From Macrostomum hystrix (Eukaryota > Animalia > Platyhelminthes): a DNA stretch of 64,000 nt. The DNA lies in assembly GCA_950097015.1 (NCBI GenBank), contig CATNEN010000026.1, positions 682,001 through 746,000 of the forward strand. The letters run 5' to 3'. Positions within the stretch are counted from its first letter, which is position 1; each line of letters starts with the position of its first letter. The notes under the pieces are model-generated. The model saw only the letters and a program-made list of their open reading frames with translations. It ran no database searches and was not told where the DNA came from. The position numbers were made by a program, and so were the translations under genes. Shown one piece after another: positions 1 through 18,290 of this stretch.

Positions 1-789
1 TTTTAATGCAAAAAGCATCTTTGGTGCACTAAAAAGAAAATTCAAGCCGTAGGCCGTTGCCTTAAACTCTAAATTCCAATGGAACACCGATTGTATAACG
101 CTGGATTAGTGCTTTAGAAGGTGCGTTAGATGCACGCTAAGTTATACTTTATTTGAAATAGACAAATGCGTTAGATGCACGCTCATTAACGAGTTAGCTT
201 TCAGCTTAGACTAAGGGAGTTATATAAGGGAGCTAGTTGAGGAGGGGATCCTGAGAAAAATTATTTTCTTAATTGACACTCATGCGAGAATATGGCCCAG
301 CCACCAGCTAAAGTCAGGCTTTTGAATTTGAGCAAATTTCCAAACAATATGATATCCGAGGAGATCGACCACATTTTTGATGAGCCTGCAGATCTATACC
401 TTGGAGTCGGCGATTGATCGAGAAAACAAAGATCTACTAGAATCTCTTTTCCAGAAGATAACCGACGAAGAGGCTGGGCTATTTGAATTGGAACAACTTG
501 TTTTTGAAATTGAAGAGACCGCTGCTAGCAAAAGTGTGACAATTAAGGGCTACTGAATACGTCTGTAAGTTGCTAAGCTTCATGATGGAGAACCATCCGT
601 CAGTTCAGCGGGATTTGGAGACTGCTACTCCGCGAGAGATTGACTGTATTTTGCGTTACTTTACGTTTAATTTCGTAAGAATGATGGCGAATACTTTGCT
701 CCAGCCACGTTGATTTGCATCCGGCGCGAGCGGCCCGCTCCCGGCATTTTATATCGACAAGCTGCATGGCAAATAATATTCTGACCGAC

Positions 790-1290
790 AATGCATTCTA
801 CGCATCCAGCAAGACGCTGAAGTTAATGGGCAGAATCTTCATTGCCCGAGGTGGACGCGCTCAACACTTCGAGTCGATCGAGCCTGCTGATATGAAGAGG
901 CTCTCTTACTACTTCGATCGGAAATCACCAGAAGTGCTGCTTCATGAAGTGTACTACGTCATATTTTCTACTTTGCGATTGATTTCGCTCCCTGAGTGAC
1001 GAATCCTTTCGTTTTGAGACGGATTCGGATGGGATTGAAGTGGTGCGCTTCTATCCAGAAGTTCAGCTGCGAGTGCAGCAGGAGCTCGACTCCGTCGTCA
1101 GCCAGTCTAGACGGCCGAGCTTGACGGACAGGGCCGAGCTGCACTAAACATGAGCTGTCGATCATCGACGAGGGTTATCGGGAATTGTCTCTCGCTGCAA
1201 TCGGAATGTTTCACCGGGCTCTCGAGGACACAACCTTTCCACGGGTATCGCATTCCGAAAGATTGCTGCGATCATACCTTTGGTGTAGGC
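790..1290 (+). pseudogene. Cytochrome P450 (CYP2-clan-like) pseudogene fragment, helices G-K and beta1 region
   Basis: Manual translation gives QHFESIEPADM (H-helix-like), FETDS, then VRFYPEVQLRVQQELDSVVSQSRRPSLTDRAELH*T*AV from 1043 (J helix; stops TAA 1145-1147 and TGA 1151-1153 where YTE is expected). After a frameshift: IIDEGYR (ExxR), then FHRALEDTTF/HGYRIPKD. No heme-binding Cys segment found. Confidence 0.75.
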
Positions 1291-3376
1291 ATCCATCCAT
1301 AGTGTCTGGCTTAGGCACGTTGCTAGTTGTTAAGTTCTAATCGCACTTGGCTAAAACCTAAAATATGGCAAATTTTCTTCTTTATGTACAATATATATTA
1401 TAATACTTACTACATTTTTAAACTTTAATTGTTTTAATTATTTTTTCACGTGAAAGCCCACAGATCATTTATTTAAAAATAATTGTCGCGGTTTATACCA
1501 AGGACCACCACGAACCTACTAGCAAGGACCACTAAAAGAAGAAGGATGGGACACTTCGTTTCTTAGAAAAATTTATTAAAGGCAGATTTTTACGGAAAAA
1601 TGCACTACGGAAAAGATAGGAACTTTTCACTTTTTCACCTTTCAATGTTGATAACTTTTTATTGGAAGCAGACACAAAGCTCTTCTTTTGATAATGCCAC
1701 ATATTTAACAAAATATGTTGCTTCGACAAATTTAGGAAAGATTTTTTCATGAATAATTGATCTTTATATTATTTTAATTACTATATCATGCAGCAATTAT
1801 AGTCTGAAGCTAACTAGTGACTCACTTGAATTTTACAATCTCTGTTTAATCGAAAACATATTTATTAGTAATATATGATTAAAAATAGTTGGTTATAATT
1901 GTATGCCCAACTCACTGCTTCTTTATTTTAGTTTTATACTTTCTATATAAAATAAGTACTCGTATTTAAATAGTACGAGCTACCTATATTCTAGCTATGC
2001 CTAGACCTAGTTATATGTTTATCAAGACAGGATCTAATTTGTTAAGAATTGACTATTTTTATACTTAAAGAAATATATCAATCCAAGCAAATGATTTAAA
2101 CCAAGCTTGTTCTCAATTCTGTTTTTAGACTTCAGCTACATTTTAGCTGACATTATCTTTACTTTAGCTGGCTTTTCCATTATTTATTAAACAATGAAAG
2201 TTCTTTGCTCTGATTTTATTTAGATGTTCTTATTTTTATTTTTTTCTACTTTTTAATGTAAACAATGGCATACATTAGCTAAAGGTCTTCTTCTAGTGGT
2301 CCTAGGAAAATACATGTTGCGTATTTGCGTTTTTGCGCCATCGTAGTATTGTCAAAATGGTTTGTGTTCAATAGGGGTATATAGTTTATATATCAGATTT
2401 GGTATTATAATAGAGGAAAAGCAAACTAAGTGAAAAATATATAGTTAAAAGCACTTTGCTAAATAGCTTATAATATGAAAAAAATTGGTTCAAGCACTTA
2501 TTTAATATTTTTTAATTTATGTATTAACAAGCTATTGATTAAAAAATGTTGCAACAAGCATAATTGAACTGTTCTTCCTATTTAAGACCAAAAGGAGCAC
2601 TATTATCAGCTTGAAAAAATTAATATTACTGGTACAAATGTCATCAATTAAGTCAAGATAATGCTAGTTTATTATTTAGCTATGCAAATGACAATGACCA
2701 TTTATTAGGGATTAGAAAACATATTTATTAACTGATATGGATATAAATTTATTATTAACCTTTATATTATACTGTATGTAGGCCTAACTTTTTTCAGTTA
2801 TGATATATATGACATAATAATCTATTATGAAATGTTTTTTTTCAATGAAAAGCAAAAAATCTATGTTGAGGATCATTTTTCATAATAATTTTTATCAAAG
2901 AGCTTGTGTGCATGGCAGCCATTGACCTAGTTATGGTGTGCATTCTCTAAAATTTCCTGTCTGTATTTGTCTATGTGCCTTCAATTGTGTTTGTATGCAC
3001 TGAAACATCAGTTGTGTCCATATTTGTGAGGCAATGGCTCACCACGCATGGTTTGCCAGTCCTACAAGCTACATTGTAAGCTAGCCATTTGTCAGAATGC
3101 ACATTCTAGGCAGGATGTGACACTAGATTATGGGAAGTAGCATAGTAGCAGTAAAATCTGGCACAATTGCCATCTTATCATACACTTGTTGCTCTGCCAT
3201 TTGATAGGCAGCCACCTATCATCATCTCACTTTGATATCCCAAGGACCCAGTGTCCCAGTGTCCCAATGTTCAAATTTTGGAAAGCAGAATTATATATTG
3301 GTTTTATGTTTCAATTTGCCCAATTATTTATGCCCATTCTTTTAGCCTCTAAATCATTAGCACTTTATAAGTAAAC

Positions 3377-5676
3377 ATGCCTCTGCCACTGGATGTTCAA
3401 CTAGACAACAATGGCAATCCAAAACGCAAGCAGTTCACTGGCGCTACTCTCTACATGCAAGAGTTGCGCAAAACTCGCCCCGAGTTTCGCCAATTTGGCA
3501 TGTTCAGCCCGGAGATGATCAGAGCTGGAATGGCAGAATTCGACCGGCTGTCAATGGATGAGCAGATGCGCTATGAGCAGATGGCTAAAGCTCAGAAAAA
3601 GAAGTACGACACACTCTATGGAGACCAGTTTAGGCGGGACTGTGAGGTGAAGTTTTGTTTATTTTTTTGAGCCTCAATTTATACTTTAGAAAATCATTAC
3701 CACCATCATTTCTGCGTCCGTTTTAAAAATTTCGTTCGATAAAGTTTGATTCTACCTACGTTTGATCTGTGCCGCCATTATTGACAACTGCATACATACA
3801 TCTGTTTAAAACCAGGGCGTCCACCTTTCCGAGCGCGAAAAGCTAGCCTCGCTCCGCAGCCAATACGAAAGCTACACAGCCGATATTGTCGCTGAAATGG
3901 CTGGCCGTCTAACCGATTCAGCCGCTTTAGCTGACACCGAATTTGTTGTCGGCGAAGTATTCACCTTTATTAACGCCGACGAGCGCGACAAAGGCGTCTG
4001 CGTGCCCGCCGAATTCGGCTTTGTTCGGTTTAGCCTTAGACTCGGCGTTATTGACTCTTTGCACTGCATTGTGCAGCCGCGTAAAGGCGCCATACCTGTT
4101 CACCTGACCAGCCAGTGCCGCGACATCATGGAGGACACGCACGGCATTCCGACCTACGGCTGTGCGGAGGCCGAGGAGAGCATGGTCAGAATGTGTATCC
4201 GGTTGAAATCGCTTTGTTCAACTAGCGCCGATAGGCCCGACCTGCAGTTGCCAATATTTGTGCCCACTGAACGGCTGGAAGCTATGCAAAAGGCACTCAT
4301 ATACGCATTTAACGACCCGAATATGTGCCGCGATGGCTGTCCGTTTGTGCGCGAAATTAGTAGGGCCAAGAATACTAAGGTCTTCCCATTCGAGAGCTTG
4401 TTTTTGGCCATTATGCGAAACACTTGCATACCGCCAGAGAAACGATTGGTAAGTATCCAAGTTAGACGGCTACTCACAGCGTACTCGGCGATTCATTTTT
4501 CTAGGCACTCTGGAACAGGCATCCCTCACCCCAGTGTTCTCACACTCATTGGGCGCTCTGGAACAGGCATCCCTCACCCCAGTGTTCTCACACTCATTGG
4601 GCACTCTGGAACAGGCATCCCTCACCCAAGTGTTCTCACACTCATTGGGCACTCTGGAACAGGCATCCCTCACCCAAGTGTTCTCACACTCATTGGGCAC
4701 TCTGGAACAGGCATCCCTCACCCCCAGTGTTCTCACACTCATTGGGCACTCTGGAACAGGCATCCCTCACCCCCAGTGTTCTCACACTCATTGGGCACTC
4801 TGGAACAGGCATCCCTCACCCCAGTGTTCTCACACTCATTGGGCACTCTGGAACAGGCATCCCTCACCCAAGTGTTCTCACACTCATTGGGCACTCTGGA
4901 ACAGGCATCCCACACCCAAGTGTTCTCACTCTCATTGGGCACTCTGGAACAGGCATCCCTCACCCCAGTGTTCTCACACTCATTGGGCACTCTGGAACAG
5001 GCGCCTCACCACGCCACATTCGCAGACCAGCTTCCTGGACCTGCAAGTCACGCAGCTGTTAAACCGGCCGCGTTACACTGGCGAAGAGCACGCCTGCCAA
5101 CTGCATCGCAGGGAGGACAACCTGCCCCACTGCGCTCTGATGAAGGCCCATATCTATGCCTGGGCTCTATTTGGCTATGCTGTGCCGGCCCTGGACCTGG
5201 CCTGGCGCAGTAGCCACGGTCCCAAGGAGCTAGACGTGCCGGTGCCCCGACCCGTCAAAGTCGGTTGGCTGACTCGCGGTAATCGCCGACTGCCCGACAG
5301 TTGTCCGTCAAATTTAGCATCAATCGGCAGGTCTTCTTCCACAATTAGCAATAGTAGTAGGCCGGCCTACGTACAGCGAATGGGGCGCCAAACTGCCGCC
5401 GGCGCCGCCGCCTCTGTCGCCGCATCTACTGCCTCTGTTGCTGATAGCGAAATTGACCAAAACTTCGACGATGCTAGTTCATTGACCAGCGTGAACGTCT
5501 TAACCGGAGAATTTCATCGCGCCCTATCGTTTGATCAGAGAACAGCTACTAGTCGTCAGGACTGCGGCATCGATGTTGGCGCCGGCCTTGATATAAATAT
5601 CGGCGTCGTTGGTCGTGGTCGCGGTCGCGGTCGTCCACGAGCTGGCGCTCATCGAGGTCCAATTATTATTGATTGA
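3377..5676 (+). CDS. mael: Maelstrom (HMG-box + MAEL domain), piRNA-pathway factor; about 517 aa
   Basis: Exons 3377-3646, 3816-4448 and 5026-5676 with GT-AG phase-0 junctions (GAG|GTGAAG, CCAG|GGC; TTG|GTAAGT, CGCAG|ACC); 1554 nt total. HMG-like PKRKQFTGATLYMQELRK...YEQMAK. MAEL core PAEFGFVRFSLRLGVIDSLHCIVQP...THGIP and ACQLHRREDNLPHCAL supply the E-H-H-C-H-C residues. Confidence 0.9.
4504..5000. repeat. 48-bp minisatellite (~10 copies) in maelstrom intron 2
   Basis: Unit GGCACTCTGGAACAGGCATCCCTCACCCCAGTGTTCTCACACTCATTG, with 1-nt indel variants. Confidence 0.95.
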
Positions 5677-5699
5677 AGTAGGAGTCAATGGCCTCGTTA

Positions 5700-6366
5700 G
5701 TGACTGAGTCATTTTCCTCCCATCCTTCAGTGACTGGGTCATTTTCCCCTCATCCTTCAGTGACTGAGTCATTTTCCTCTCATCATTTAGTGACTGAGTC
5801 ATATTCCTCTCATCATTTAGTGACTGAGTCATATTCCTCCCATCCTTCAGTGACTGGGTAATTTTCCTCCCATCCTTCAGTGACTGGGTCATTTTCCTCC
5901 CATCCTTCAGTGACTGGGTCATTTTCCTCCCATCCTTCAGTGACTGGGTCATTTTCCTCCCATCCTTCAGTGACTGAGTCATTTTCCTCTCATCATTTAG
6001 TGACTGAGTCATATTCCTCTCATCATTTAGTGACTGAGTCATTTTCCTCCCATCCTTCAGTGACTGGGTCATTTTCCTCCCATCCTTCAGTGACTGGGTC
6101 ATTTTCCTCCCATCCTTCAGTGACTGGGTCATTTTCCTCCCATCCTTCAGTGACTGGGTCATTTTCCTCCCATCCTTCAGTGACTGGGTTATTTTCCTCC
6201 CATCCTTCAGTGACTGGGTTATTTTCCTCCCATCCTTCAGTGACTGGGTCATTTTCCTCCCATCCTTCAGTGACTGGGTCATTTTCCCCTCATCCTTCAG
6301 TGACAGTCATTTTCCTGTCATCCTTCAGTACTGAGTCATATTCTTCTCATCCCACAGTAACTGAGT
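5700..6366. repeat. 30-bp minisatellite (~22 copies) just downstream of the maelstrom stop codon
   Basis: Unit GTGACTGGGTCATTTTCCTCCCATCCTTCA; explains ORFs 5524..6282 and 5880..6368. Confidence 0.95.
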
Positions 6367-6730
6367 AATTTTCCTTTCCTTTGTTTCAATTTTCTATCCC
6401 TACGGCCGCTTTCGACTGTCAGGAAGTTTCATCGCTTGCAAAAGCCAGCAGTCTTTTCAGTGTTTTTAATACTGTCTTGTATTTGAAGTGTTACAAAACA
6501 GTCTGCTAATAAATTGGCTCCACCGCTCTCCTTTGTTGCCTGTCATTTTTAATCAGTGATGCAGGCGTCGCGTTTCTTTGTGAGTGTTTTAATGGTAATA
6601 CGGAGTAATAAACAGAAAAAATGTTTGTTTCGCTTTTTTATTTTCAGTTGATCTTTCTACGTTCGAGACAAGGATTTTTCGGTTTGAATGAAAAAATTAA
6701 TGAAAATAACGAAGTGAAACCCATTTTATT

Positions 6731-7135
6731 ATGAGTGAATGTGTGTGTATGAGTGAATGTGTGTGTATATGAGTAAATGTGTGTGTGTATGAGTGAATGC
6801 GTGTGTATATGAGTGAATGTGTGTGTATATGAGTGAATGCGTGTGCGTGAATGTGTGTGTATGTGAGTGAATGTGTGTGTATATGAGTGAATGCGTGTGT
6901 ATATGAGTGAATGCGTGTGTATATGAGTGAATGTGTGTGTATTTGAGTGAATGCGTGTGCGTGAATGTGTGTGTATGTGAGTGAATGTGTGTGTATATGA
7001 GTGAATGCGTGTGTATATGAGTGAATGTGTGTGTATTTGAGTGAATGCGTGTGCGTGAATGTGTGTATGAGTGAATGTGTGTATGAGTGAATGTGTGTAT
7101 GAGTGAATGTGTGTATGAGTGAATGTGTGTGCGTG
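6731..7135. repeat. Compound TG-rich micro/minisatellite
   Basis: Repeated TGAGTGAATG(T/C)GTGTGTATA-like units. Confidence 0.9.
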
Positions 7136-7472
7136 AGGTCGGGCTAGTTCAGAACTCCGTGAACTCAAGTAACTCCGTGAACCCCGTACACTCAAGGGGA
7201 TGTGTTTGCCTGGGGTAGGAACTCCTGAGTGCCAGCTCACACATCCTCCCCTCCATCTTGTCCGCCTCGTATGCGCGGTCTCGCGCTCCGTTCCTTTTGC
7301 TGGCCCTTATCCGGGAGGGCTATACCAGTCTGGGGATATTGGGAAGGGTTGAAGGGAAGAGAAGGTTAACGGCTGAGCAGAGATCTAGGAGCAGCTAACG
7401 CTCAGAGGAAGGAAACGCCGGCTAAGGAGGAGGGAGAGCACGGGATAGGGAAGATTTATTTATCCCCTGCGC

Positions 7473-7533
7473 CGCCCCGCCCAGCTTATTATTTCTGTCT
7501 AGTGAGCATATCCCCTGTACTAAGTGTATAAAG
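7473..7533 (+). promoter_or_regulatory. Putative core promoter of the Rac-like gene (GC box + TATA box)
   Basis: CCGCCCCGCCC at ~7472-7482 and TATAAAG at 7527-7533, about 85 nt before ATG 7618. Motif match only. Confidence 0.4.
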
Positions 7534-7617
7534 CCCGGCAGCAACCGGTCGGCAGACAGGGGCAAGTCTCACAGTCAAACTGCACGCGATCAGTCACAGA
7601 CGGGCTGAAGCCATCAG

Positions 7618-9676
7618 ATGCAGTCTATCAAATGCGTGGTTGTCGGAGACGGCGCTGTTGGCAAGACCTGCCTGCTGATCTCGTACGCCACAAACCAGTT
7701 TCCGGATGAGTACATACCGACAGTATTTGACACCTACAGCGCCAATGTGATGGTGCAGCAAAAGTCCATCAACCTGTGCCTCTGGGACACCGCCGGTGAG
7801 TCACAGTTTTCTCTCCTCATCCCCGACTCCGTTCCCTACAATAATCATCCGCTCCCTACTCGCCCTCTCCCTACTCGCCCGCTCCCAACTCTTTTCATCC
7901 GCTCCCTGCTCGATTCATCCGCTCCCAACTCTTTTCATCCGCTCCGTACTCGATTCATCCGCTCCCTACTCAATTCATCCGCTCCCAACTTGATTCATCC
8001 ACTCCTAACTCCATTCATCCGCTCCCTACTCGATTCATCCGCTCCTAACTCCATTCATCGGCTTCCTACTCGATTCATCCGCTCCCTACTCGATTCATCC
8101 ACTCCCTACTCCATTCATCCGCTCCCTACTCGATTCATCCGCTCCCTACTCCATTCATCCACTTCCTACTCCATTCATCCGCTCCCTACTCGATTCATCC
8201 ACTCCTAACTCCATTCATCCGCTCCCTACTCGATTCATCCGCTCCCTACTCGATTCATCCGCTACCTACTCGATTCATCCGCTCCCCACTCGATTTATCC
8301 GCTCCCTACTCAATTCATCCGCTCCCCACTCGATTCATCCACTTCCTACTCCATTCATCCGCTCCCTTACTCGATTCATCCGCTCCCTACTCGATTCATC
8401 CACTCCTAACTCCATTCATCCGCTCCCTACTCGATTCATCCGCTCCTAACTCCATTCATCCGCTCCTAACTCGATTCATCCGCTTCCTACTCGATTCATC
8501 CGCTCCCTACTCGATTCATCCACTCCCTACTCCATTCATCCGCTCCCTACTCTTTTTATCCGCTCCCTACACGATTCATCCGCTCCCAACTCCATTCATC
8601 CGCTCCCTAATCGATTCATCCGCTCCCCAATCGATTCATCCGCTCCTAACTCCATTCATCCGCTCTGCATACTGACTTCACGCACTCCCTGCTTTATGTC
8701 TCCGCTCTCTACTCACTTCTTCGCTCCATAATCGGTTTGTTCGCGCAACGACTCCTCCATCTTCCTTTTCTCGTCCGCTTGCAGGCCAGGAAGAATACGA
8801 CCAGCTGCGCATTCTCAGCTACCCCCAGACAGACGTCATGATCGTCTGCTTCTCCCTGGAGAATCCAGTCAGCTGCGACAATGTCCGCTCCAAGTGGGTG
8901 CCGGAGGTGCGCCACTACGCGCCGGACGCGCCAGTCCTGCTGGTTGGCACCAAGCGCGATCTGCGCGAAGATCCCGGAACTGTTGAACGACTGCTGGCCA
9001 AGGGTCGGGCGCCAGTCAGCACGGAGAAGGTGGGTGCACAGATTGACCTGTTGTTATGCCGACAGAAGTATTAGTAATATTCTGTTCCATCCGCCCCCTT
9101 CAATCCGCGCCTTACTCCGCTCCCTTTCATCTGCCCCTTCTATCCAGCCTTTCCATCCGCCCTTCCATTCGCCCCCTTCTTTCCGCCCCTTTCCATCCGC
9201 CCCCTTCCATCCGCCCCCTTCCATCCGTCCCCTTCATCCGCCCCCTTCCATCCGCCCCTTACATCCAGCCCTTCCATCCGCCCCATCGATTCGCCCCCTT
9301 CCATCCGCCGCTTCCGTCCGCCCCTTCCATCCGCCCCTCCTTCTGCCCCTCGCTCCATCCGCCTCTTTTTCATCCACCCGCTTCTCTTTGCCTCCATATT
9401 AAATCCTCCTAATCTCCCTTGTGGGACTTCTCACCAGATTCCTCCATCCTGAGCTCCCTAACTCCAAGCCTTGTTTTAATTGGCATCGTCTGATTGGCTC
9501 TCCTTTCCGCCAATCAGGGCCAAGCGCTAGCCAAGGAGGTGCAGGCCGCCGCTTACCTAGAGTGCTCTTCAAAGCTGCAGTCGGAAGTGAAGTCAGTCTT
9601 TGACGAGGCCATCCGGCTGGTCCTGGTGCCACGACAACCGGTCAGGCGACAGAAGCGCGAGTGCCAACTACTTTGA
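7618..9676 (+). CDS. Rho-family small GTPase, Rac/RhoG subfamily; 193 aa
   Basis: Exons 7618-7795 (G|GTGAGT), 8785-9029 (GCAG|GC; AAG|GTGGGT) and 9518-9676 (TCAG|GGC); 582 nt. Motifs [28 protein letters not shown], a basic tail and CaaX CQLL. Confidence 0.93.
7845..8667. repeat. ~20-bp minisatellite filling Rac intron 1
   Basis: Unit CTCGATTCATCCGCTCCCTA with variants. Confidence 0.93.
9083..9380. repeat. ~13-bp C-rich minisatellite in Rac intron 2
   Basis: Unit CCATCCGCCCCTT, degenerate. Confidence 0.85.
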
Positions 9677-10371
9677 GTAGTCTGACGCAGGCATGAGAGA
9701 TATTTTTGTAGGTTCGACTAATATTAATTATGAGTTAGTGATCCCATGTGGAATCGAGTATTTAATGAAAAACTGCACCGCACAGTCTGGCGTAGAAATT
9801 ATTGTCCTTCCTTCATCCGTTCCAAGGATCTTCCACATATTTCCCAATATTTGCCTCCGTCTGGTTTTCTCTGACCTTTTCATTCGAAACAAAACGTTAT
9901 GTTTTTACTTAATGTTACGACATTGGCCCAAAAAAATCAGCCGCTAGCTTCCGCAAATCGACTTAGAGAAGACAAAACCTTTTCGCCTTTGACACCTAAA
10001 ACATTCGGTCTCGTCGAGAGCACTCTACTGCTTGCGGCCTTGCTTCAGAGTGCATGGCTTAGCTGCTTGCGCTTCTTATTTTGCCAACTGCTTTTTTTGC
10101 CTAAGCTTTGCGCGATCGGTATAAAGAAGCTATTCTTTCCTTTGCATAGGCTTTTCCCGATATCCAAAATGTTTTACCTTATTTGACACACCTGTAAATA
10201 CCTGCTGTGTTACTAAAAAGTACTCTTGGATTATATAGATGTGTAAGGATGGACGTTTTATCGATTTTATTTAGTCTTAATGAGAGCGTTTATAAAAACA
10301 TTTAAAAAAGTAAAACTTATATTTCTTGAACATCATTTCGATTCGCGCACGCCTATTAGATAAATTGCTAT

Positions 10372-10762
10372 TGTGTACATTGAAGGAGGAATGGGTGTCG
10401 GGGTTGGAGAGAGCTAGCTGTGGCGTGTGTACATTGAAGGAGGAATGGGTGTCGGGGCTGGAGAGAGCTAGCTGTGGCGTGTGTACATTGAAGGAGGAAT
10501 GGGTGTCGGGGCTGGAGAGAGCTAGCTGTGGCGTGTGTACATTGAAGGAGGAATGGGTGTCGGGGCTGGAGAGAGCTAGCTGTGGCGTGTGTACATTGAA
10601 GGAGGAATGGGTGTCGGGGCTGGAGAGAGCTAGCTGTGGCGTGTGTACATTGAAGGAGGAATAGGTGTCGGGGCTGGAGAGAGCTAGCTGTGGCGTGTGT
10701 ACATTGAAGGAGGACTGGGTGTCGGGGCTGGAGAGAGCTAGCTGTGGTGTGTACATTGAAGG
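10372..10762. repeat. 54-bp minisatellite (~7 copies)
   Basis: Unit TGTACATTGAAGGAGGAATGGGTGTCGGGGCTGGAGAGAGCTAGCTGTGGCGTG. Confidence 0.95.
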
Positions 10763-11439
10763 TGTAAATTGTTAATGTCTCTAAATTTATTAGTGTCAGC
10801 CGTGTAACTAATGGTATCCATATCTGTAGAGCATTAGAAATCAAGAAATCATGCAACAACGCACGTATTCAGCCGAGCACAAACGGTATATATTACTTGT
10901 TAAGTAGTCTAATAGAGACGCGAACGTTGAAATCTCAAAAGTACTTGAAAATACATTTTAACGAATCAAAAGTATCCTAAAATTTCATGAAAAGATTTGA
11001 GCCGACAAAACAGCCGCAGTTATTGCTCTCAAGCAAGCAAACTATTGTTTTTTTCCCATTGCTAAAGGTGCTAAAGGAAATTGAAATTAGATGAAAAAAG
11101 GTAGCTAAACAAATTCGTACATGTGTATTTATTAGGAAAAAAGGTCCGAATAAATTAAATTTCAAAGGAATGTATTGAAAACAGTAAGAAGTTTGGAAAC
11201 AAAGGAAATATACATGCACTTCGTTGGCTTTGACCAAAATAGGCTCAAATTATTAAGTAGAAAATATACCAATTGATCTAAAGAAAATATCTATCAAACG
11301 CATGCTATGAAAGAGTGTATTTTAATTCAAGATAACAAGTACTGAGAAATATCAAACAAGACTACACAGGTCTAAGCTGCAATAAAAAACTAATAAGTCC
11401 TGTCCGCTCAGGATGGAACCCCTGGAAATGGGTGGTGGG

Positions 11440-11850
11440 ACTGGATAGGGTTATCTTTAGCGGTGTACATTGAAGGGGTGGTGGGGCTGGAGAGGGTTAT
11501 CAATGGCGGTGTACATTGAAGGGGTGGTGGGGCTGGAGAGGGTTATCAATGGCGGTGTACATTGAATGGGTGGTGGGGCTGGAGAGGGTTATCAATGGCG
11601 GTGTACATTGAAGGGGTGGTGGGGCTGGAGAGGGTTATCAATGGCCGTGTACATTGAAGGGGTGGTGGGGCTGGAGAGGGTTATCTCTGGCCGTGTACAT
11701 TGAAGGGGTGGTGGGGCTGGAGAGGGTTATCTCTGGCTGTGTACATTGAAGGGGTGGTGGGGCTGGAGAGGGTTATCAATGGCGGTGTACATTGAATGGG
11801 TGGTGGGGCTGGAGAGGGTTTTTTATAGCGGTGTATATTGAAGGGTGGTG
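11440..11850. repeat. 46-bp G-rich minisatellite (~8-9 copies)
   Basis: Unit GTGTACATTGAAGGGGTGGTGGGGCTGGAGAGGGTTATCAATGGCG; period 46 (11463 to 11509). Confidence 0.95.
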
Positions 11851-12190
11851 CTCTTATGTTGCTTTTTATGGTGCTTTAACTTGAACTGCAAACAGAATAT
11901 ATTCAACAGGACTTTCTGAGCAGACGGTCAGCGAGTCAAGTGTTTAACACCAGTGACATGATTTTTTTAGATATATTGATACGATCAATTAAGCGAGGTG
12001 AAAATAAGTTAATAAAAAAGCACAGGTAGCACAGCCAAAAACAAACAAGAAACATTTACTGGTATTATAAATGGACGGAAACCTAGTTCCAGTATTTTAG
12101 CTAAAAAGTTTCAAAAAGATTGACCATAATAGCATTATATTTAAAAAGTTCAATTGGTACTTTGAAGCCGATTTAGCTGGCATATTCTAC

Positions 12191-15100
12191 TTACTCCTGA
12201 GCGGATCCGTTCGAGTACTCAACCAGCAGGCAGGGTGACAACAGTCTCGGATCGAACAGCACGTACTCCCTGGCCAAATTGTCATCGCCTTTGTAGGCGG
12301 AACGGCCCGGACAGAGCAGGGACTGATAGCCGGGCGAGGCGGCTGCCCGGCCGCGGCACGGCGTCACGACGGTCTCGGTGGCGCCGAGGGCGGCCCAGAC
12401 TAGCAGCAGGCGGCCAGGCGGAGCGTACAGGGCGGCGGTGAGCGGCGACGGGCTGAGGTAGAAGCCGAGGCCGAAAGCGCCCTGATTTGGTTTTTTTTTC
12501 GCGGGTGTTAAATTTCCACGTCAGTGATCGATTGCGAAATCCTTGGCGTTTGCTGGTTAACAGTAGAAAGACCAAGCTATTCCCCCCAGGGAAAACACGA
12601 CGGGCTATTTCAAATACCCACTGCCTACTTCACGGTAGCTCCCAAAACCGAATGACCGATTTTCGTGAAAGTGCATCATTTGGATCGACATTTCCCGCCC
12701 TTCACGATGAACAAACTTTCAAAGCCTTCCGAGTCAGCATCGTCGAGATTTTCAGCAATTTTTGTCGAAGACCCTGGTGACAAGGACAACTAACAGGGGT
12801 CTGTATAAATATTTTTGGCGAATCCATATTTATTAAAAGTCGCTGCACTCACTTCAAGCTCACACTCCCTCCTCTAGATTAGAAAGGTAGGATTTCTGCC
12901 ACTTTGGGATAATTTCGTGTCGAGCAATAACAGCTGAAGTCACCTGTTCCATGTGCTCAGCTCCGGTGAAGCCGCGCTCAATCAGGGCGTCGCACGACTC
13001 TGGCCTACGTGGGCCGCACAGGTAGAGCTGCGTGCACTGCTGCTGCTGCTGCTGCTGGCGCCAGTGCTCGGCTAGGGCGGGCGCTGGCTCGCGCACCGAA
13101 GTCACTCTGTGCCGGCCGTTAGGCGAGCGCGGATCCGAGTTGAGGCCGCGCTCGATTCGATCAGCGGCGACGCGCCAACGACTCGGCACAGCGTCGTCGG
13201 AGTTTAAGGCCGATGCCGAAGCAGCCGAGGCGGCCGCGGCATCCGGTGGTTTTTCGCCACAAGTTTCCGCCCCGTTAGTGGCACTGAAATTAGCCAATCG
13301 TAGCTGCTCGGTAAGGGATCTGATCAGGTCGTCCCTAGACTGCACCAGCAGGCGCATGTGGGCCAATTCGTGCCGCATTCGTTCGAACAGAATGGTCTGC
13401 GAGTTCAACGACTTGACCTGCAAGGATCAAGCATGACGAGAGGACGCATAGAGACACCCTTGAAAAACAGTAGTAGGAGTAACTATGCACAAAGTTGCGC
13501 AGTTAGATGCTTCGTCATCTACGAGCCTCGTAATCAGTGCAAAAATACAAGCTCCCTTGTAGGCTATAGTCCATCGGTTAATAATAATAATAATCTGCCC
13601 ATTCCGCTGACTCCTGAGCACACACGCACACGGATAATGTGAGCAGACCCCCTGCCATAGAGTCCCAAGTACATAGAATGTAAAACTGTACACGGCCTTG
13701 AGAGATTTGTTGTGCACCATAAACCTAAACTGGGTGTGAGTTTTATGGCGCCGTCATTATTCAGACATAATTCAGACCACTCAATTCTCACCTGCTTCGC
13801 CCGGTTAGCAAAGAACTCCTTCTCCATCTCCTTGGTTTCTAGGCGGGAGGAGAATGGCAGAGCCGGGTGGTCGGGAGCGAAGGCTGACCAGGGCGGGTGG
13901 TAGGACATGATGGTGCAGTTGTAGAACTGGTCAGCGAAGTCCGACCATTTCTCGTTCATCACTGAATCGGCGATGAAGCCCCAGCGGGCGAAGAAGGACA
14001 CGGCGTCCGGGTCGGCGTGAACAACCACGGCCGAGTGTCGGCCCACAATGACCGGATCCTTCAGGCAGCGGAGTAGGGCGCTGCCAAGACCGGCGCGACG
14101 GAAGCGAGACCGCACGGCCAGGAACACCAGGTGAATAACGCGCTCGCCTTCAACCGTCTTCAGATCGAAAGTGGCAGCCCCGGCTAGACGATCGACCACA
14201 GCGGCGGAGGCGACGGTTGTCGGTGTGGATTGCTTGGAATCTGATTGGTGGGCATCGGTAATTATGAATTTACATCGGTATTTCGATGAAGACTAAGCGA
14301 AAAAAGGCTTTTATTGAAGATGCAAATTTTGTCTTGACTTTAGCACTCAAACCAAATAAACCCTGAGCCATACCGCCAGCTGCTGCCTTCAACCGATCAG
14401 CGGCTCGCGCTTCGAACAAAATTCGTGACTCCAGCTGTCGCCGAATGAAAGACCGATAGCCGACTGAAAAATCCTCATCCTCATCCTCGTCTTCGTCTTC
14501 CCATTCGTCGTCTCCGCCAGCTTCGGCGTCTTCGTCCGACGAATAGAACTGTACAAAGTCCGAGGTGCGCTCAGGGTCAGGTTCGAAATGGTCCTGCTTG
14601 TCCTCTGGCGGCGGCGCGTACTTGGCCAACAGAGGGACGTAGACAGCTTTGCGAGCCTCGGCTAGAGCTTGTTCGTCAGGCTGCTGCTGCTGCTGCTGCT
14701 GCTCTTCCTCACTGCCAGACTCTAAACTGTCAAAAATTAGATCAAGTCGCTGTCAGTTAGAAGCGATTTTGTCGCCTGTTTTTTCACAGAGTCTATAAAA
14801 AACCCGTTCTCTAAAAAAATTCCGAGGCTTAAACCATTCTGGACAGAATGAAGAGGCCGCTAGACTGCCTTCTGCGTCAGCCTCAGCGACTCGATGTCTC
14901 TTCGGTGTCGTATTGAAGCCTGACTGATTTAGTGAGTCGTTGAAATCTTTGGGACAATGTGCTCACCAATTTTCTCGCTCCTTGAGCAGCCTATCCCGTT
15001 CGCCTTTCAGCGCCTTCTCGGCCCGCGCCTCGGCAGCTTCCAACACTTCGGCGGGTTCTCGCAAAGCCAGCAGGGTATAGGTATTGTCGCCAGTCACAGT

Positions 15101-15382
15101 TGAGTAGATAATCTCAGTCTCCATGGACCCCAAGGCCACATCGTATAGGGCGGTGAGTGCGTGGACCACATCGGCAGCTGGAATGCCACCAACCTGACCC
15201 GGCGAGGACTTGCCAACGGAGCCAAGCAGCCGTTTGACATTGACCAGGTAAATCGATAACCGATACCGGGCACCTTGGCCGTAGGGAACAGTCAGGTCTG
15301 TCAGGCATACAGACGGCTGACCGCTTAGCAACTGGCTTACTGTGCCCTCCAGCGTGCGGCTGCAGATTCGATAGTGTAACAT
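12191..15382 (-). CDS. Uncharacterised Gcn5-type GNAT acetyltransferase - coiled coil - PARP/ART-like fusion protein; ~660 aa, 5' end uncertain
   Basis: Exons (minus) 15382-14967, 14726-14374, 14240-13792, 13417-12944 and 12481-12191. All junctions are GT-AG with compatible phases 2,1,0,0; total 1983 nt, stop TAA at 12193-12191. GNAT motifs: LTALYDVALGSMETEIIYSTVTGDNTYTLLALRE and DRLAGAATF...HLVFLAVRSRFRRAGLGSALL...VVHADPDAVSFFARWGF. PARP-like motifs: LYLCGP...LIERGF...GAFGLGFYLS...LLLVWAALG...PGYQS...REYVLFD...PCLLVEY. The last exon is absent from the ORF track and was translated manually. Confidence 0.8.
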
Positions 15383-15464
15383 GTCAGTAGAAATGCCAAA
15401 TAAAACATTTAGATATTATACATTTTGGCGAATAACGATTTCATTCAATTGTGATTTCGGTGAA

Positions 15465-15820
15465 ACGGGATTCCAGTGAATCGGGATTCTAGTGAATCGG
15501 GATGTCAGTGAATCGGGATTTCAGTGAATCGGGATTCCAGTGAATCGGGATTTCGGTGAATCGGGATTTCGGTGACTTGGGATTCCAGTGAATCGGGATT
15601 TCGGTGAATTGAGATTCCAGTGAATCGGGATTTTGATGAATCCGGATTTCAGTGAATCGGGATTTCAGTGAATCGGGATTTCAGTGAATCGGGATTCCAG
15701 TGAATCGGGATTTCGGTGAATCGGGATTTCGGTGACTTGGGATTCCAGTGAATCGGGATTTCGGTGACTTGGGATTTCAGTGAATCGGGATTCCAGTGAA
15801 TCCGGATTTCCGGATTTCGA
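15465..15820. repeat. 16-bp minisatellite (~22 copies)
   Basis: Unit CAGTGAATCGGGATTT. Confidence 0.95.
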
Positions 15821-16815
15821 AATTTAACTTTAACAAGAACATATAAGCACTAAAATATTAAAATATTGTAAAACGGTAGATCTTTTTTTTAAAATACAGC
15901 TAAAGAAAAGACACGACAACAACCAGTGGATACTAATAAGTAGTGCTACATGCAGAACTTAGACAAGACAATTGACAGAGCAATGTAACCAATTTTATTT
16001 ATAAAAAACTTGGAAATAGAACGAATAGTAAAATTAATTGTTTCGTTGTACAACAAGGAAAGACGACAATACAAAGAATGTAAAAAGCTAAAAACAGTAA
16101 AACAATTTAGATGCGAAATAGTATAACACAATTAATCATAGAAAACATTTTTAATCAAACAAAATTTATAATAGAAGCATTTTGGTAACAGGCATTTTCG
16201 TTCAAATATTATGCCCGCTAGATTAACAAAATACTAAAATTATTTGAATTTGTGACAAGTTGCAACAATGAAATAGCCAAGAGTTCTAACGTGCATGTGT
16301 ACTTTACTAAGCTAAAAAGTGCAACAATGCTACTTATAATTGTACTTTCAATTCTTTGTTTTTATATTCGATCGCTCAAATAGGTTTAAGGTTGTTGCTA
16401 TTTTTAGAAAGTCTTTAATTAATCATTTTTAAACGACCGTGACCTTAAACACGTGACACGTGGCAGCCAATCAAAATTATAGAAGACTTTTATGGTTTTG
16501 TTTGTTATCTTTTTAATTTTACAATAAATGTGCAATCATCCAGCACAGAAAAGCCTATTATAATAATGCAACGAATAACGACCATACGGCACTTTTTTAT
16601 CTAAACACTATATTGCACAAACAAAGATGCGTTTGGTACTCATAAATATGTAAGATTATAACAGAAATAAATGCGATATAATTAGTTGTGCTCTACTTTT
16701 TGTCGAATTATATAGTAGTTTAGAGATACACGCATACGCACACGCAAGTAACCCGTAAAAAAAACTTTTTGAGTCGTTACCGAAGCCGCTTTAATTGTCA
16801 CGGTAACTGTATGGC

Positions 16816-18290
16816 TCAGCCGCTTTTATTTGACCCTGAAGCTCTGGCAACTGTGTACACAGCTAAGCCAATAACAATAAGCACAACAGCCAGTATAAGC
16901 AGTAGTAGGGCTCGATTTTGTATAACCCTGCGCAGCATGCCGCTTAGAATGCGACTACTGGCGCCTAGATCATGATTAGTTCCGCGCAGTCGATCCCGAC
17001 TCCGCTCCAGGGCTTCCCTTTGGCCAGCCAGGTCGGCCAGAATAGCCCTGCCGACTTGCTGCGTAGCCTCGACGCTGCTGGCGCCTTCGTCTATGCGACG
17101 ACCAATCCGTTCTAGACGCTCAGTGTTGTCTAATAGGCGAGTGCTATAGTCGGACGACAGCTCTTCGTGATGCTGCTGCAACGAGTGCTCAGCGTCGGCT
17201 AGAAGCTCGTCGCGATCTCGCCTGGCCTGACCGGATTCTCTGCGCCCAGGAGGTAGGGGAGGTAAGAGAGATTAAAATATACATACGCGGCATAATGAGA
17301 GATCAAAAGATGAAATAGGCGGCGTACAAAAAAGATCAAAGGAAAAGATAAGCGGAGTACTGAAACAACAAAGAAAAAATAAGGCAGCGTACTGAGAGAA
17401 CTATGGAAAAGATAAGGCGGCGCACTGAGAGATCTATGGAAAAGATAAGGCCGCGTACTGAGAGATCTATGGAAAAGATAAGGCGGCGTACTGAGAGATC
17501 TATGGAAAAGATAAGGCGGCGTACTGAGAGATCTATGGAAAAGATAAGGCGGCGTACTGAGAGATCAATGGAAAAGATAAGGCGGCGTACTGAAAGATCA
17601 AAGGAAAAGATAAGCGGCGTACTGAAAGATCAAAGGAAAAGATAAGCGGCGTACTGAGAGATCAAAGGAAAAGATAAGGCGGCGTACTGAAAGATCTGAG
17701 GAAAAACTGTTAATTAATTATGTAAGGAATAAAAGTTCAAAGCAAAATATGGGTGGTATTTAGCCATTACAAAAAATCAAAAGATACAAAAATTTTTGTA
17801 CAGAAGATCAGAATTTCGATAAGAGAATCCCAATCATCATAGATAAAGATAGAGGCCTTGTTTGAAAGCTACTAAACGGATTATCTAATTCAAATTATGT
17901 GAACTCTATTACCTAGCCCTGCGGAAATCGGCCTCTAGTTTCCTGTGCTCAGCAGCAAAGCTCTGCAGCCGGGTAGTGTACTTCTGACGCAGCGACGGCG
18001 GCTGGCTTCTAGTCTCGAGCTCCATCTGTTCCAGTGTCTCCTTGGCCTCACTGAACAGGCGCTCAGCCTGGCTAATGGCTGTGACTCTGTCATCTATTGT
18101 GGGAAAATTAAATAGTTAAAAACTGTTTTGCATTCGACATTTGCATTTTATAGTAGACAATGAGATGAAAAATGTTTTTGAGAAGCAACAAATTACCTGA
18201 ATTAGAAAGGTGAGATACCTGATTGATTTTACTTGTTATCTCAGCTGTTGTAATGCCAAACTGTTGCTCATAAGTCTCTAGTAGAGACAT
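16816..18290 (-). CDS. VTI1A: Vesicle transport v-SNARE Vti1a; 232 aa
   Basis: Exons (minus) 18290-18197, 18093-17913 and 17239-16816, phases 1 and 2; 699 nt. MSLLETYEQQFGITTAEITSKI...EAKETLEQMELE..., SNARE motif LLDNTERLER...RDRLRGTNHDLGASSRILSGMLRRVIQNR, C-terminal TM helix. Confidence 0.93.
17335..17700. repeat. 33-bp minisatellite in VTI1A intron 2
   Basis: Unit GAAAAGATAAGGCGGCGTACTGAGAGATCTATG. Confidence 0.93.

Follow-up and report, generated by a model that had tools for sequence, protein, structure and literature searches.

The stretch of DNA analysed here (the window: 64,000 nucleotides of the Macrostomum hystrix contig CATNEN010000026.1, positions 682,001 to 746,000) carries a gene that joins a Gcn5-type acetyltransferase domain of the GNAT family and a domain of the PARP family in one polypeptide. 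Here, we found that this GNAT-PARP fusion gene is real, expressed and selectively constrained, and that its architecture is a property of a whole protein family and not peculiar to the M. hystrix genome or the window. The family, in which a GNAT fold, a coiled coil and a PARP fold with a Cys-Tyr-Glu (C-Y-E) triad follow one another, is ancient, vertically inherited, eukaryotic and uncharacterised. Taken as a whole, we consider it likely that the gene is best explained as a member of this family, encoding a four-part protein for which a mechanism is tentatively proposed below.

A transcribed fusion gene

The gene lies on the minus strand, and all coordinates are window positions. Five segments, bordered by GT..AG and matching in phase, combine into an open reading frame of 1983 nt (660 codons). 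They had been joined into one gene in the original prediction, a model's reading of the raw sequence, and the junctions drawn there, including 12944/12481, are spanned by transcripts. As transcript source we used public runs in which about 0.55 of the words sampled from the locus are present, a share similar to the exon fraction of the stretch; their run type is recorded as '?'. The Logan contigs of three of them, X3 (2034 nt), X4 (2090 nt) and X5 (2076 nt), each run through all five exons at even depth with the introns removed. Their joints lie at 12480|12943 (cut +1), 13415|13790 (cut +2) and 14240|14374, and where they step from 14671 to 14967 the record holds exactly 55 letters, just what the repeat-masked (CAG) 5' end of exon 2 requires. 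The exons and junctions of the 660-residue model are thus found in the contigs, whereas the ATG at 15382 with which it opened lies outside transcript support. The features of the gene are as follows.

15382-14967, 14726-14374, 14240-13792, 13417-12944 and 12481-12191, minus strand: the five exons as first drawn, from the open reading frame and splice borders
15361..15382, minus strand: first-drawn ATG and seven codons, outside the contigs
14967..15360, minus strand: exon 1 as backed by the contigs from X3, X4 and X5; N-terminal half of the predicted Gcn5-type fold and start of the insert
about 15059-15268, minus strand: beta1-alpha1-alpha2-beta2 of the predicted Gcn5-type fold, within exon 1
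14374..14726, minus strand: exon 2; helical and acidic insert inside the GNAT fold; joint 14240/14374 present in the contigs
14528-14548, minus strand: nearly invariant motif F-x-S-D-(S/T/E)-E of the insert, from the family alignment
14456-14473, minus strand: motif D-F-S-x-G at the end of the acidic run of the insert, from the family alignment
13792..14240, minus strand: exon 3; GNAT core and start of the coiled coil; Pfam match
13879-14187, minus strand: GNAT core, beta3 to beta6, in exon 3
14131-14133, minus strand: His at the position of the Gcn5 catalytic Glu, aligned to the Glu of Tetrahymena GCN5
14083-14100, minus strand: acetyl-CoA loop R-R-A-G-L-G, which fits (Q/R)-x-x-G-x-(G/A) and is kept in the family alignment
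12944..13417, minus strand: exon 4; helical/coiled-coil segment, linker and first part of the PARP fold
from exon 3 to 13298, minus strand: conserved helical/coiled-coil segment, ending in exon 4
13187-13297, minus strand: Ala/Gln-rich, poorly conserved linker, in exon 4
from 13186, minus strand: start of the predicted PARP fold in exon 4, including L-Y-L-C-G-P
13016-13018, minus strand: triad Cys (L-Y-L-C-G-P), in exon 4
12191..12481, minus strand: exon 5; remainder of the PARP fold; joint 12480/12943 present in three runs
12458-12460, minus strand: triad Tyr (G-F-Y-L-S), in exon 5
12266-12268, minus strand: triad Glu (R-E-Y-V-L-F), in exon 5
12191-12193, minus strand: stop codon TAA, end of exon 5
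12076..12190, minus strand: 3' untranslated region of at least this length; the contigs end at 12141 (X3), 12089 (X5) and 12076 (X4)

Coiled coil and first PARP strands are both encoded within exon 4 alone, so the two halves are joined without any assumption on splicing. In the Macrostomum lignano orthologue the five-exon structure is the same, and there too the V-SNARE gene lies upstream. Based on the contigs of the three runs, the content of exon 4 and the gene structure in M. lignano, we regard the fusion as established at the mRNA level.

Comparing the window gene with that of M. lignano region by region, we obtained the following ratios of nonsynonymous to synonymous change (dN/dS): in the GNAT fold 0.13 for the N-terminal half and 0.07 for the core, in the coiled-coil segment 0.06 and in the PARP fold 0.12. 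All of them are rough because dS is near saturation (0.85-1.4). The linker diverges freely, with 39% identity. Both the GNAT and the PARP fold are under purifying selection, and a decaying domain is excluded.

Two observations on the transcript data may be added. At position 15003 the window has C on its plus strand and all four runs have G, a strain or allele difference that changes Gly127 of the helical insert to Ala. Within introns 4 (12605-12846) and 3 (13573-13693) the RNA-like runs show numerous loose ends and a contig depth of 45-345 and about 2300-2900, respectively, where the exons reach about 10; such stretches probably represent repeats, dispersed or simple (AAT and CA runs), that other transcripts contain as well.

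The N-terminal Gcn5-type domain

Exon 3 matches Pfam Acetyltransf_10 at 6e-9 and Acetyltransf_1 at 2.5e-6, both above cut-off. Its top match among the PDB sequences is Tetrahymena GCN5 (E-value 1e-4), with VIHLVFLAV of the window aligned to FAEVAFLAV. For structure models of both domains we used the M. lignano orthologue, which is about 83-89% identical to the window protein in the folded domains. An AlphaFold2 model of its residues 1-400, built on a 35-sequence family alignment, reached a predicted local distance difference score (pLDDT) of 80; Foldseek matched this model to GCN5/PCAF, and VIA-align superposed it on the histone acetyltransferase domain of PCAF/GCN5 with a Z of 18.2 and a root-mean-square deviation of 2.1-3.0, covering 153-163 of about 160 residues between model positions 34 and 375. 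The N-terminal 380 residues are thus predicted by modelling to form a complete Gcn5/PCAF-type GNAT fold (beta1-alpha1-alpha2-beta2-4-alpha3-beta5-alpha4-beta6), the class to which the domain had originally been assigned. Given the span of the structural alignment, exon 1 would contribute beta1-alpha1-alpha2-beta2 and exon 3 the rest.

About 170 residues, helical and acidic, are inserted between beta2 and beta3 of the fold. In addition to the two conserved motifs listed above, this insert carries a poly-Gln run and an acidic run encoded by exon 2. S191, D192 and F225 of the insert are nearly invariant across the family, and the pLDDT falls below 50 at 193-213.

The position of the Gcn5 general base (E173 in yeast Gcn5) is not conserved as Glu. 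It is His in spiralians, including the window gene, Gln in deuterostomes, cnidarians, Pigoraptor and Cyanophora, and Lys or Glu in two vertebrates. Due to this replacement the acetyltransferase may be slow, use another base or be inactive.

In its fold over the roughly 160-residue catalytic domain and in the R-x-x-G-x-G loop, the window protein resembles GCN5/PCAF (KAT2A/KAT2B). The window family differs by the 170-residue insert, by an identity of just 18-25%, and by the lack of PCAF_N and bromodomain in the 17 members scanned with Pfam. We rejected an assignment as KAT2 orthologue because the bromodomain, PCAF_N and the catalytic Glu are all missing.

The C-terminal PARP fold and its altered triad

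The PARP fold is less readily detected. Exons 1, 4 and 5, searched singly against Pfam and the PDB sequences, gave no match, so that the link to PARPs needed full-length orthologues and a family profile. By language-model features, exon 5 falls among PARP fragments and clusters of the protein atlas (0.94). The Pfam PARP model PF00644, with a gathering threshold of 26.7 bits, scores 31-45 bits in many orthologues (e.g. 43 and 45); the Macrostomum proteins stay below it, with 13.7 bits in M. lignano or no match. The link of the window to the PARP family thus runs via the family profile and not through a direct Pfam call: the window C-terminus matches the domain of a chiton orthologue at an E-value of 4e-14, and a profile of 40 family sequences matches the whole catalytic domain of tankyrase-1 at 2e-14. 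The motif pairs in which the original prediction had recognised a tankyrase/PARP core are the same pairs as in this profile alignment.

The AlphaFold2 model of the M. lignano C-terminal domain has a pLDDT of 88 and a predicted template modelling (TM) score of 0.85. Foldseek placed tankyrases, PARP3 and PARP4 first (TM 0.72, probability 1.0), and the best 50 matches in the PDB and the best 30 in Swiss-Prot are all PARPs, with TM scores of 0.64-0.73. As judged from these models, the C-terminus is a PARP/ADP-ribosyltransferase catalytic fold of a minimal, tankyrase-like kind. As originally noted, bromodomain, WWE, macro and ankyrin modules are missing, and Pfam gave no module other than these two folds in the orthologues.

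A point absent from the original prediction is that the His of the PARP triad is replaced by Cys, and this throughout the family. In the profile alignment the H-G-S of tankyrase falls on C-G-(S/G/T). We counted the triad residues in 99 family domains. The first position is Cys in 78 domains, Ser, Gly, Ala or another residue in 19 and a gap in 2; His was found in none of the 99. The triad Tyr is kept in 91 of the 99 domains and the triad Glu in 86 of the 89 residues at its column (97%), and the motifs G-x-G-x-Y-F and P-G-R are nearly invariant. Macrostomum carries further changes in the pocket, with Pro following the Gly (C-G-P) and Leu where most members keep the Ser of the nicotinamide site.

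Among known PARPs, the family is closest to tankyrases 1 and 2 (PARP5a/b) in profile and structure, and both have minimal ADP-ribosyltransferase domains without the helical regulatory subdomain. They differ in that the window family has no ankyrin repeats, no SAM domain and no zinc-binding insert (a gap in the alignment), carries C-Y-E and not H-Y-E, and shares 14-18% identity. Orthology to tankyrase was rejected as well, because the protein has no ANK or SAM domain by Pfam, a C-Y-E triad and a GNAT fold as its N-terminus. A second comparison is with PARPs that kept the fold and lost the canonical His: plant PARP3 (C-V-E), RCD1/SRO, PARP13/ZAP and PARP9. The structural and profile matches of the family fold include SRO, RCD1 and ZAP, and land-plant PARP3 provides the published precedent of a His-to-Cys exchange (PMC2964712). 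These proteins also lost the Tyr, the Glu or both, and are shown or thought to be inactive; the window family keeps both residues, and its partner domains differ. Plant PARP3 neither binds NAD+ nor makes poly(ADP-ribose), and PARP1 mutated to C-V-E is inactive yet binds NAD+ (PMC6701155).

A phage (Uroviricota) cluster of the protein atlas combines ART-PolyVal and GNAT domains, an analogous and apparently unrelated pairing.

An ancient family overlooked so far

Is the combination of the two folds a common architecture? An exhaustive profile search with exon 3, followed by retrieval of the matching proteins, returned the M. lignano proteins (653-660 residues, 87% identical over exon 3 and about 75% over the whole model) and about 170 further matches, many of them 600-750 residues long and alike in the relative position of the GNAT domain. 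At least 82 of the fetched proteins carry both domains in the same order, so that the architecture suggested for a search in other taxa is found in existing 'uncharacterized protein' entries. Homology is collinear throughout the N-terminal half of the GNAT fold, the motifs of the acidic insert, the GNAT core, the coiled coil and the PARP fold. Full-length examples with the same domain order and C-Y-E are XP_064605898.1 of Liolophura, XP_014351554.1 of Latimeria ('si:dkeyp-50b9.1') and PAA64509.1 of M. lignano.

Spiralian members come from molluscs, nemerteans, a brachiopod, a bryozoan, annelids and protein-atlas clusters dominated by rotifers; deuterostome members from echinoderms, a hemichordate, amphioxus, sharks, a chimaera, coelacanth and amphibians; and early-branching animals are represented by cnidarians, Trichoplax and a ctenophore. 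An acoel member is also present. Outside animals we found the unicellular holozoan Pigoraptor and the glaucophyte Cyanophora; in both, Pfam PARP is above cut-off and the GNAT domain is weaker, with a single match (Cyanophora, Acetyltransf_10) passing. A maximum-likelihood tree, computed without Symsagittifera, broadly follows the species tree and places the window protein within the spiralians, on a very long Macrostomum branch of 2.3 changes per site. Four ray-finned fishes (Polyodon, Amia, Lepisosteus and Acipenser) and the horseshoe crab Tachypleus keep the GNAT domain and the coiled coil and have no PARP domain.

Source names of the family members are without exception "uncharacterized", "hypothetical" or a bare domain label. 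In the open literature and two surveys of the PARP family, subscription-only reviews aside, we saw no GNAT-PARP architecture, no animal clade with C-Y-E and no paper on the family, which agrees with the original statement that no characterised protein of this kind was known. The folds themselves are classical; new, as far as we have seen, are their combination, the C-Y-E triad and the phyletic pattern. The family probably escaped notice owing to its apparent absence from mammals, flies and nematodes; the family searches brought up no member from amniotes, insects or nematodes. One hint to a biological role comes from the zebrafish gene whose name NCBI transfers to the family, which is testis-enriched together with meiotic genes (bioRxiv 10.1101/650218). 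We treat it as no more than a hint because the four ray-finned-fish orthologues, none of them from a teleost, have no PARP half.

The concern that automatic annotation might miss or split the gene was half justified. The NCBI models of M. lignano do include the last exon, whereas Pfam misses the PARP domain in the fast-evolving Macrostomum lineage, and here its detection from the raw sequence adds to automatic annotation.

The 5' end

At 15360, directly after the acceptor tctgcag, all three contigs depart from the genome and continue for 23 further letters. Because of this divergence, 15361-15382 with its ATG at 15382 is unsupported as exon, and it is probably intron or outron, not coding sequence. 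Residues 12-112 are clearly coding (dN/dS 0.13 against M. lignano). In M. lignano an equivalent ATG is followed by an in-frame TGA ahead of the conserved reading frame, and NCBI flags the proteins as 5'-partial. Comparing window positions 15361-16900 with the M. lignano locus, we found no conserved upstream exon, just the coding end of the V-SNARE gene and repeat fragments. A homologue search with the M. lignano protein brought up M. lignano entries alone, probably because words of low complexity crowded the candidates, and hence no N-terminus from transcripts of the window's species. By comparison with the orthologues, the residues missing at the N-terminus appear to number only about 5-15.

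About 30% of M. lignano genes receive, by trans-splicing, a 35-nt leader with ATG at its end (PMC8629364). The identical overhang of 23 letters in three assemblies would fit a shared spliced leader. We rejected the M. lignano leader as the source of the ATG: joined at 15360 it is out of frame and gives no ATG in the protein's own frame.

A tandem array of a 16-bp unit (23 copies, 83% matches) occupies 15437-15810, a short way upstream of exon 1 as backed by the contigs. In the M. lignano locus the corresponding place (L001, about 4500-5830) is taken by an array of about 20 bp that is unrelated to it. Each species thus carries a satellite in its intron or outron, with a sequence that differs between species.

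Proposed function

The order of parts in the protein is fixed: a GNAT fold with its insert, a helical, coiled-coil-like segment, a variable linker and a minimal tankyrase-like PARP fold with C-Y-E. We speculate that the N-terminal part is a chromatin- or histone-directed acetyltransferase dependent on acyl-CoA, since the Gcn5-like fold, the intact R-x-x-G-x-G loop and an acidic stretch with CK2-type sites, as in histone binders, suggest a basic substrate of the histone type. The conserved amphipathic helix that follows the GNAT domain suggests that the protein probably pairs through the coiled coil. The PARP fold would be non-canonical, either a module that binds NAD+ or ADP-ribose and thereby regulates or targets the acetyltransferase, or a weak mono-ADP-ribosyltransferase, and presumably not a poly(ADP-ribose) polymerase. 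Due to the further eroded pocket of Macrostomum (C-G-P and Leu for the nicotinamide-binding Ser), a binding or regulatory role would be likelier in this species. Tentatively, and with slightly less than even confidence, we favour this version of the mechanism, a chromatin- or histone-directed acetyltransferase equipped with a non-canonical PARP-fold module.

Several points weigh against this reading or restrict it. The functional steps are all deduced from sequence, and this for every family member. Most of the family has no general-base Glu, and the PARP-less fishes and Tachypleus demonstrate that the two halves are separable. The selection ratios are rough, as said. Finally, the retention of the triad Glu is what one would expect of a working ADP-ribosyltransferase and not of a dead domain, which favours a dual writer, i.e. 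one polypeptide that acetylates and (mono-)ADP-ribosylates its targets, with the Cys functionally replacing the triad His.

We consider this dual writer unlikely, if a contender to be taken seriously. It would agree with the near invariance of Glu (86/89), Tyr (91/99), G-x-G-x-Y-F and P-G-R, with the intact CoA loop, with purifying selection on both domains and with an architecture retained since before animals. It has to contend with the complete absence of His, with a first triad position that also tolerates Ser, Gly and Ala, with the replaced Gcn5 Glu, with the additional pocket changes of Macrostomum and the loss of the PARP domain in some lineages, as well as with the inactivity of a PARP1 whose first two triad residues are Cys and Val (PMC6701155). 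From the sequences, the near-universal Glu would be the strongest argument for real NAD+ chemistry, and the universal loss of His together with the plant precedent the strongest argument against it. At the other extreme, both domains might be pseudoenzymes, and the protein a scaffold or sensor that binds acetyl-CoA, NAD+ or their products without any catalysis. The exchange of the Gcn5 Glu for His or Gln and of the PARP His for Cys, and the inactive C-V-E PARP3 of plants, point in this direction; we nevertheless think it quite improbable, as the CoA loop is conserved and the triad Glu, for which no structural role is known, is almost invariant. Moreover, many GNATs work without a Gcn5-type Glu.

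Two further explanations concern the gene itself. The fusion might be an artefact of read-through, assembly or annotation, with the last exon part of a different gene. This could be argued solely from Logan contigs being assemblies and from the '?' given as run type. The joint is present in three runs at even depth, exon 4 carries both parts, 82 proteins are collinear and the M. lignano exon structure is identical, all of which renders such an artefact highly improbable. A chance likeness to PARPs in a low-complexity tail rich in Ala, Gly and Pro would account for the empty Pfam and PDB searches with exon 5 alone and for the mere 13.7 bits of the M. lignano protein; against the chiton match (4e-14), the tankyrase profile match (2e-14) and a confident AlphaFold2 model with only PARPs among its listed Foldseek matches in the PDB, its chances appear negligible. 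We rejected both the chimeric transcript and the chance similarity, contradicted as they are by the contigs, the collinearity of the family, the profile and the fold evidence.

A bolder version would see in the family a previously unrecognised C-Y-E PARP clade that forms with its Gcn5-type acetyltransferase a single enzyme. It would employ both cofactors, acetyl-CoA and NAD+, on chromatin, either as a dual writer or with one activity gated by the other cofactor, and it would have existed in the animal ancestor and earlier, escaping notice in part through the loss of the PARP half in ray-finned fishes; we regard this version as doubtful. PARPs and Gcn5-type acetyltransferases are among the best-studied classes of chromatin modifiers, and both read the metabolic state through their cofactors, NAD+ and acetyl-CoA. 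Apparently nobody has yet studied this conserved protein, which hard-wires both folds and occurs in most animal phyla and in at least two eukaryotes outside the animals. With it one can ask of a natural protein whether a C-Y-E PARP domain binds or uses NAD+ and whether acetylation and ADP-ribosylation are coupled in one molecule. These questions are directly testable: RNA interference and transgenesis are established in M. lignano, and Nematostella, oysters, sea urchins and axolotl carry the gene as well.

Genomic neighbourhood

Immediately upstream on the same strand, a V-SNARE (Vti1-like) gene has its last coding exon at 16816-17181 (minus; Pfam V-SNARE_C, 1.6e-15). The same neighbour in M. 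lignano supports the orthology of the locus.

On the plus strand, an open reading frame at 3897-4500 contains a Maelstrom domain (8e-16) and runs into long tandem peptide repeats; Maelstrom is a germ-plasm component of the piRNA pathway. The first exon of a small GTPase of the Ras superfamily follows at 7618-7800 (plus strand; Pfam Ras, 4e-20), with a Rac/Cdc42-like region from G1 to the switch. Between 4500 and 11000 there are several long tandem-repeat arrays, which give rise to spurious long open reading frames on both strands and are accompanied by strong swings in GC skew.

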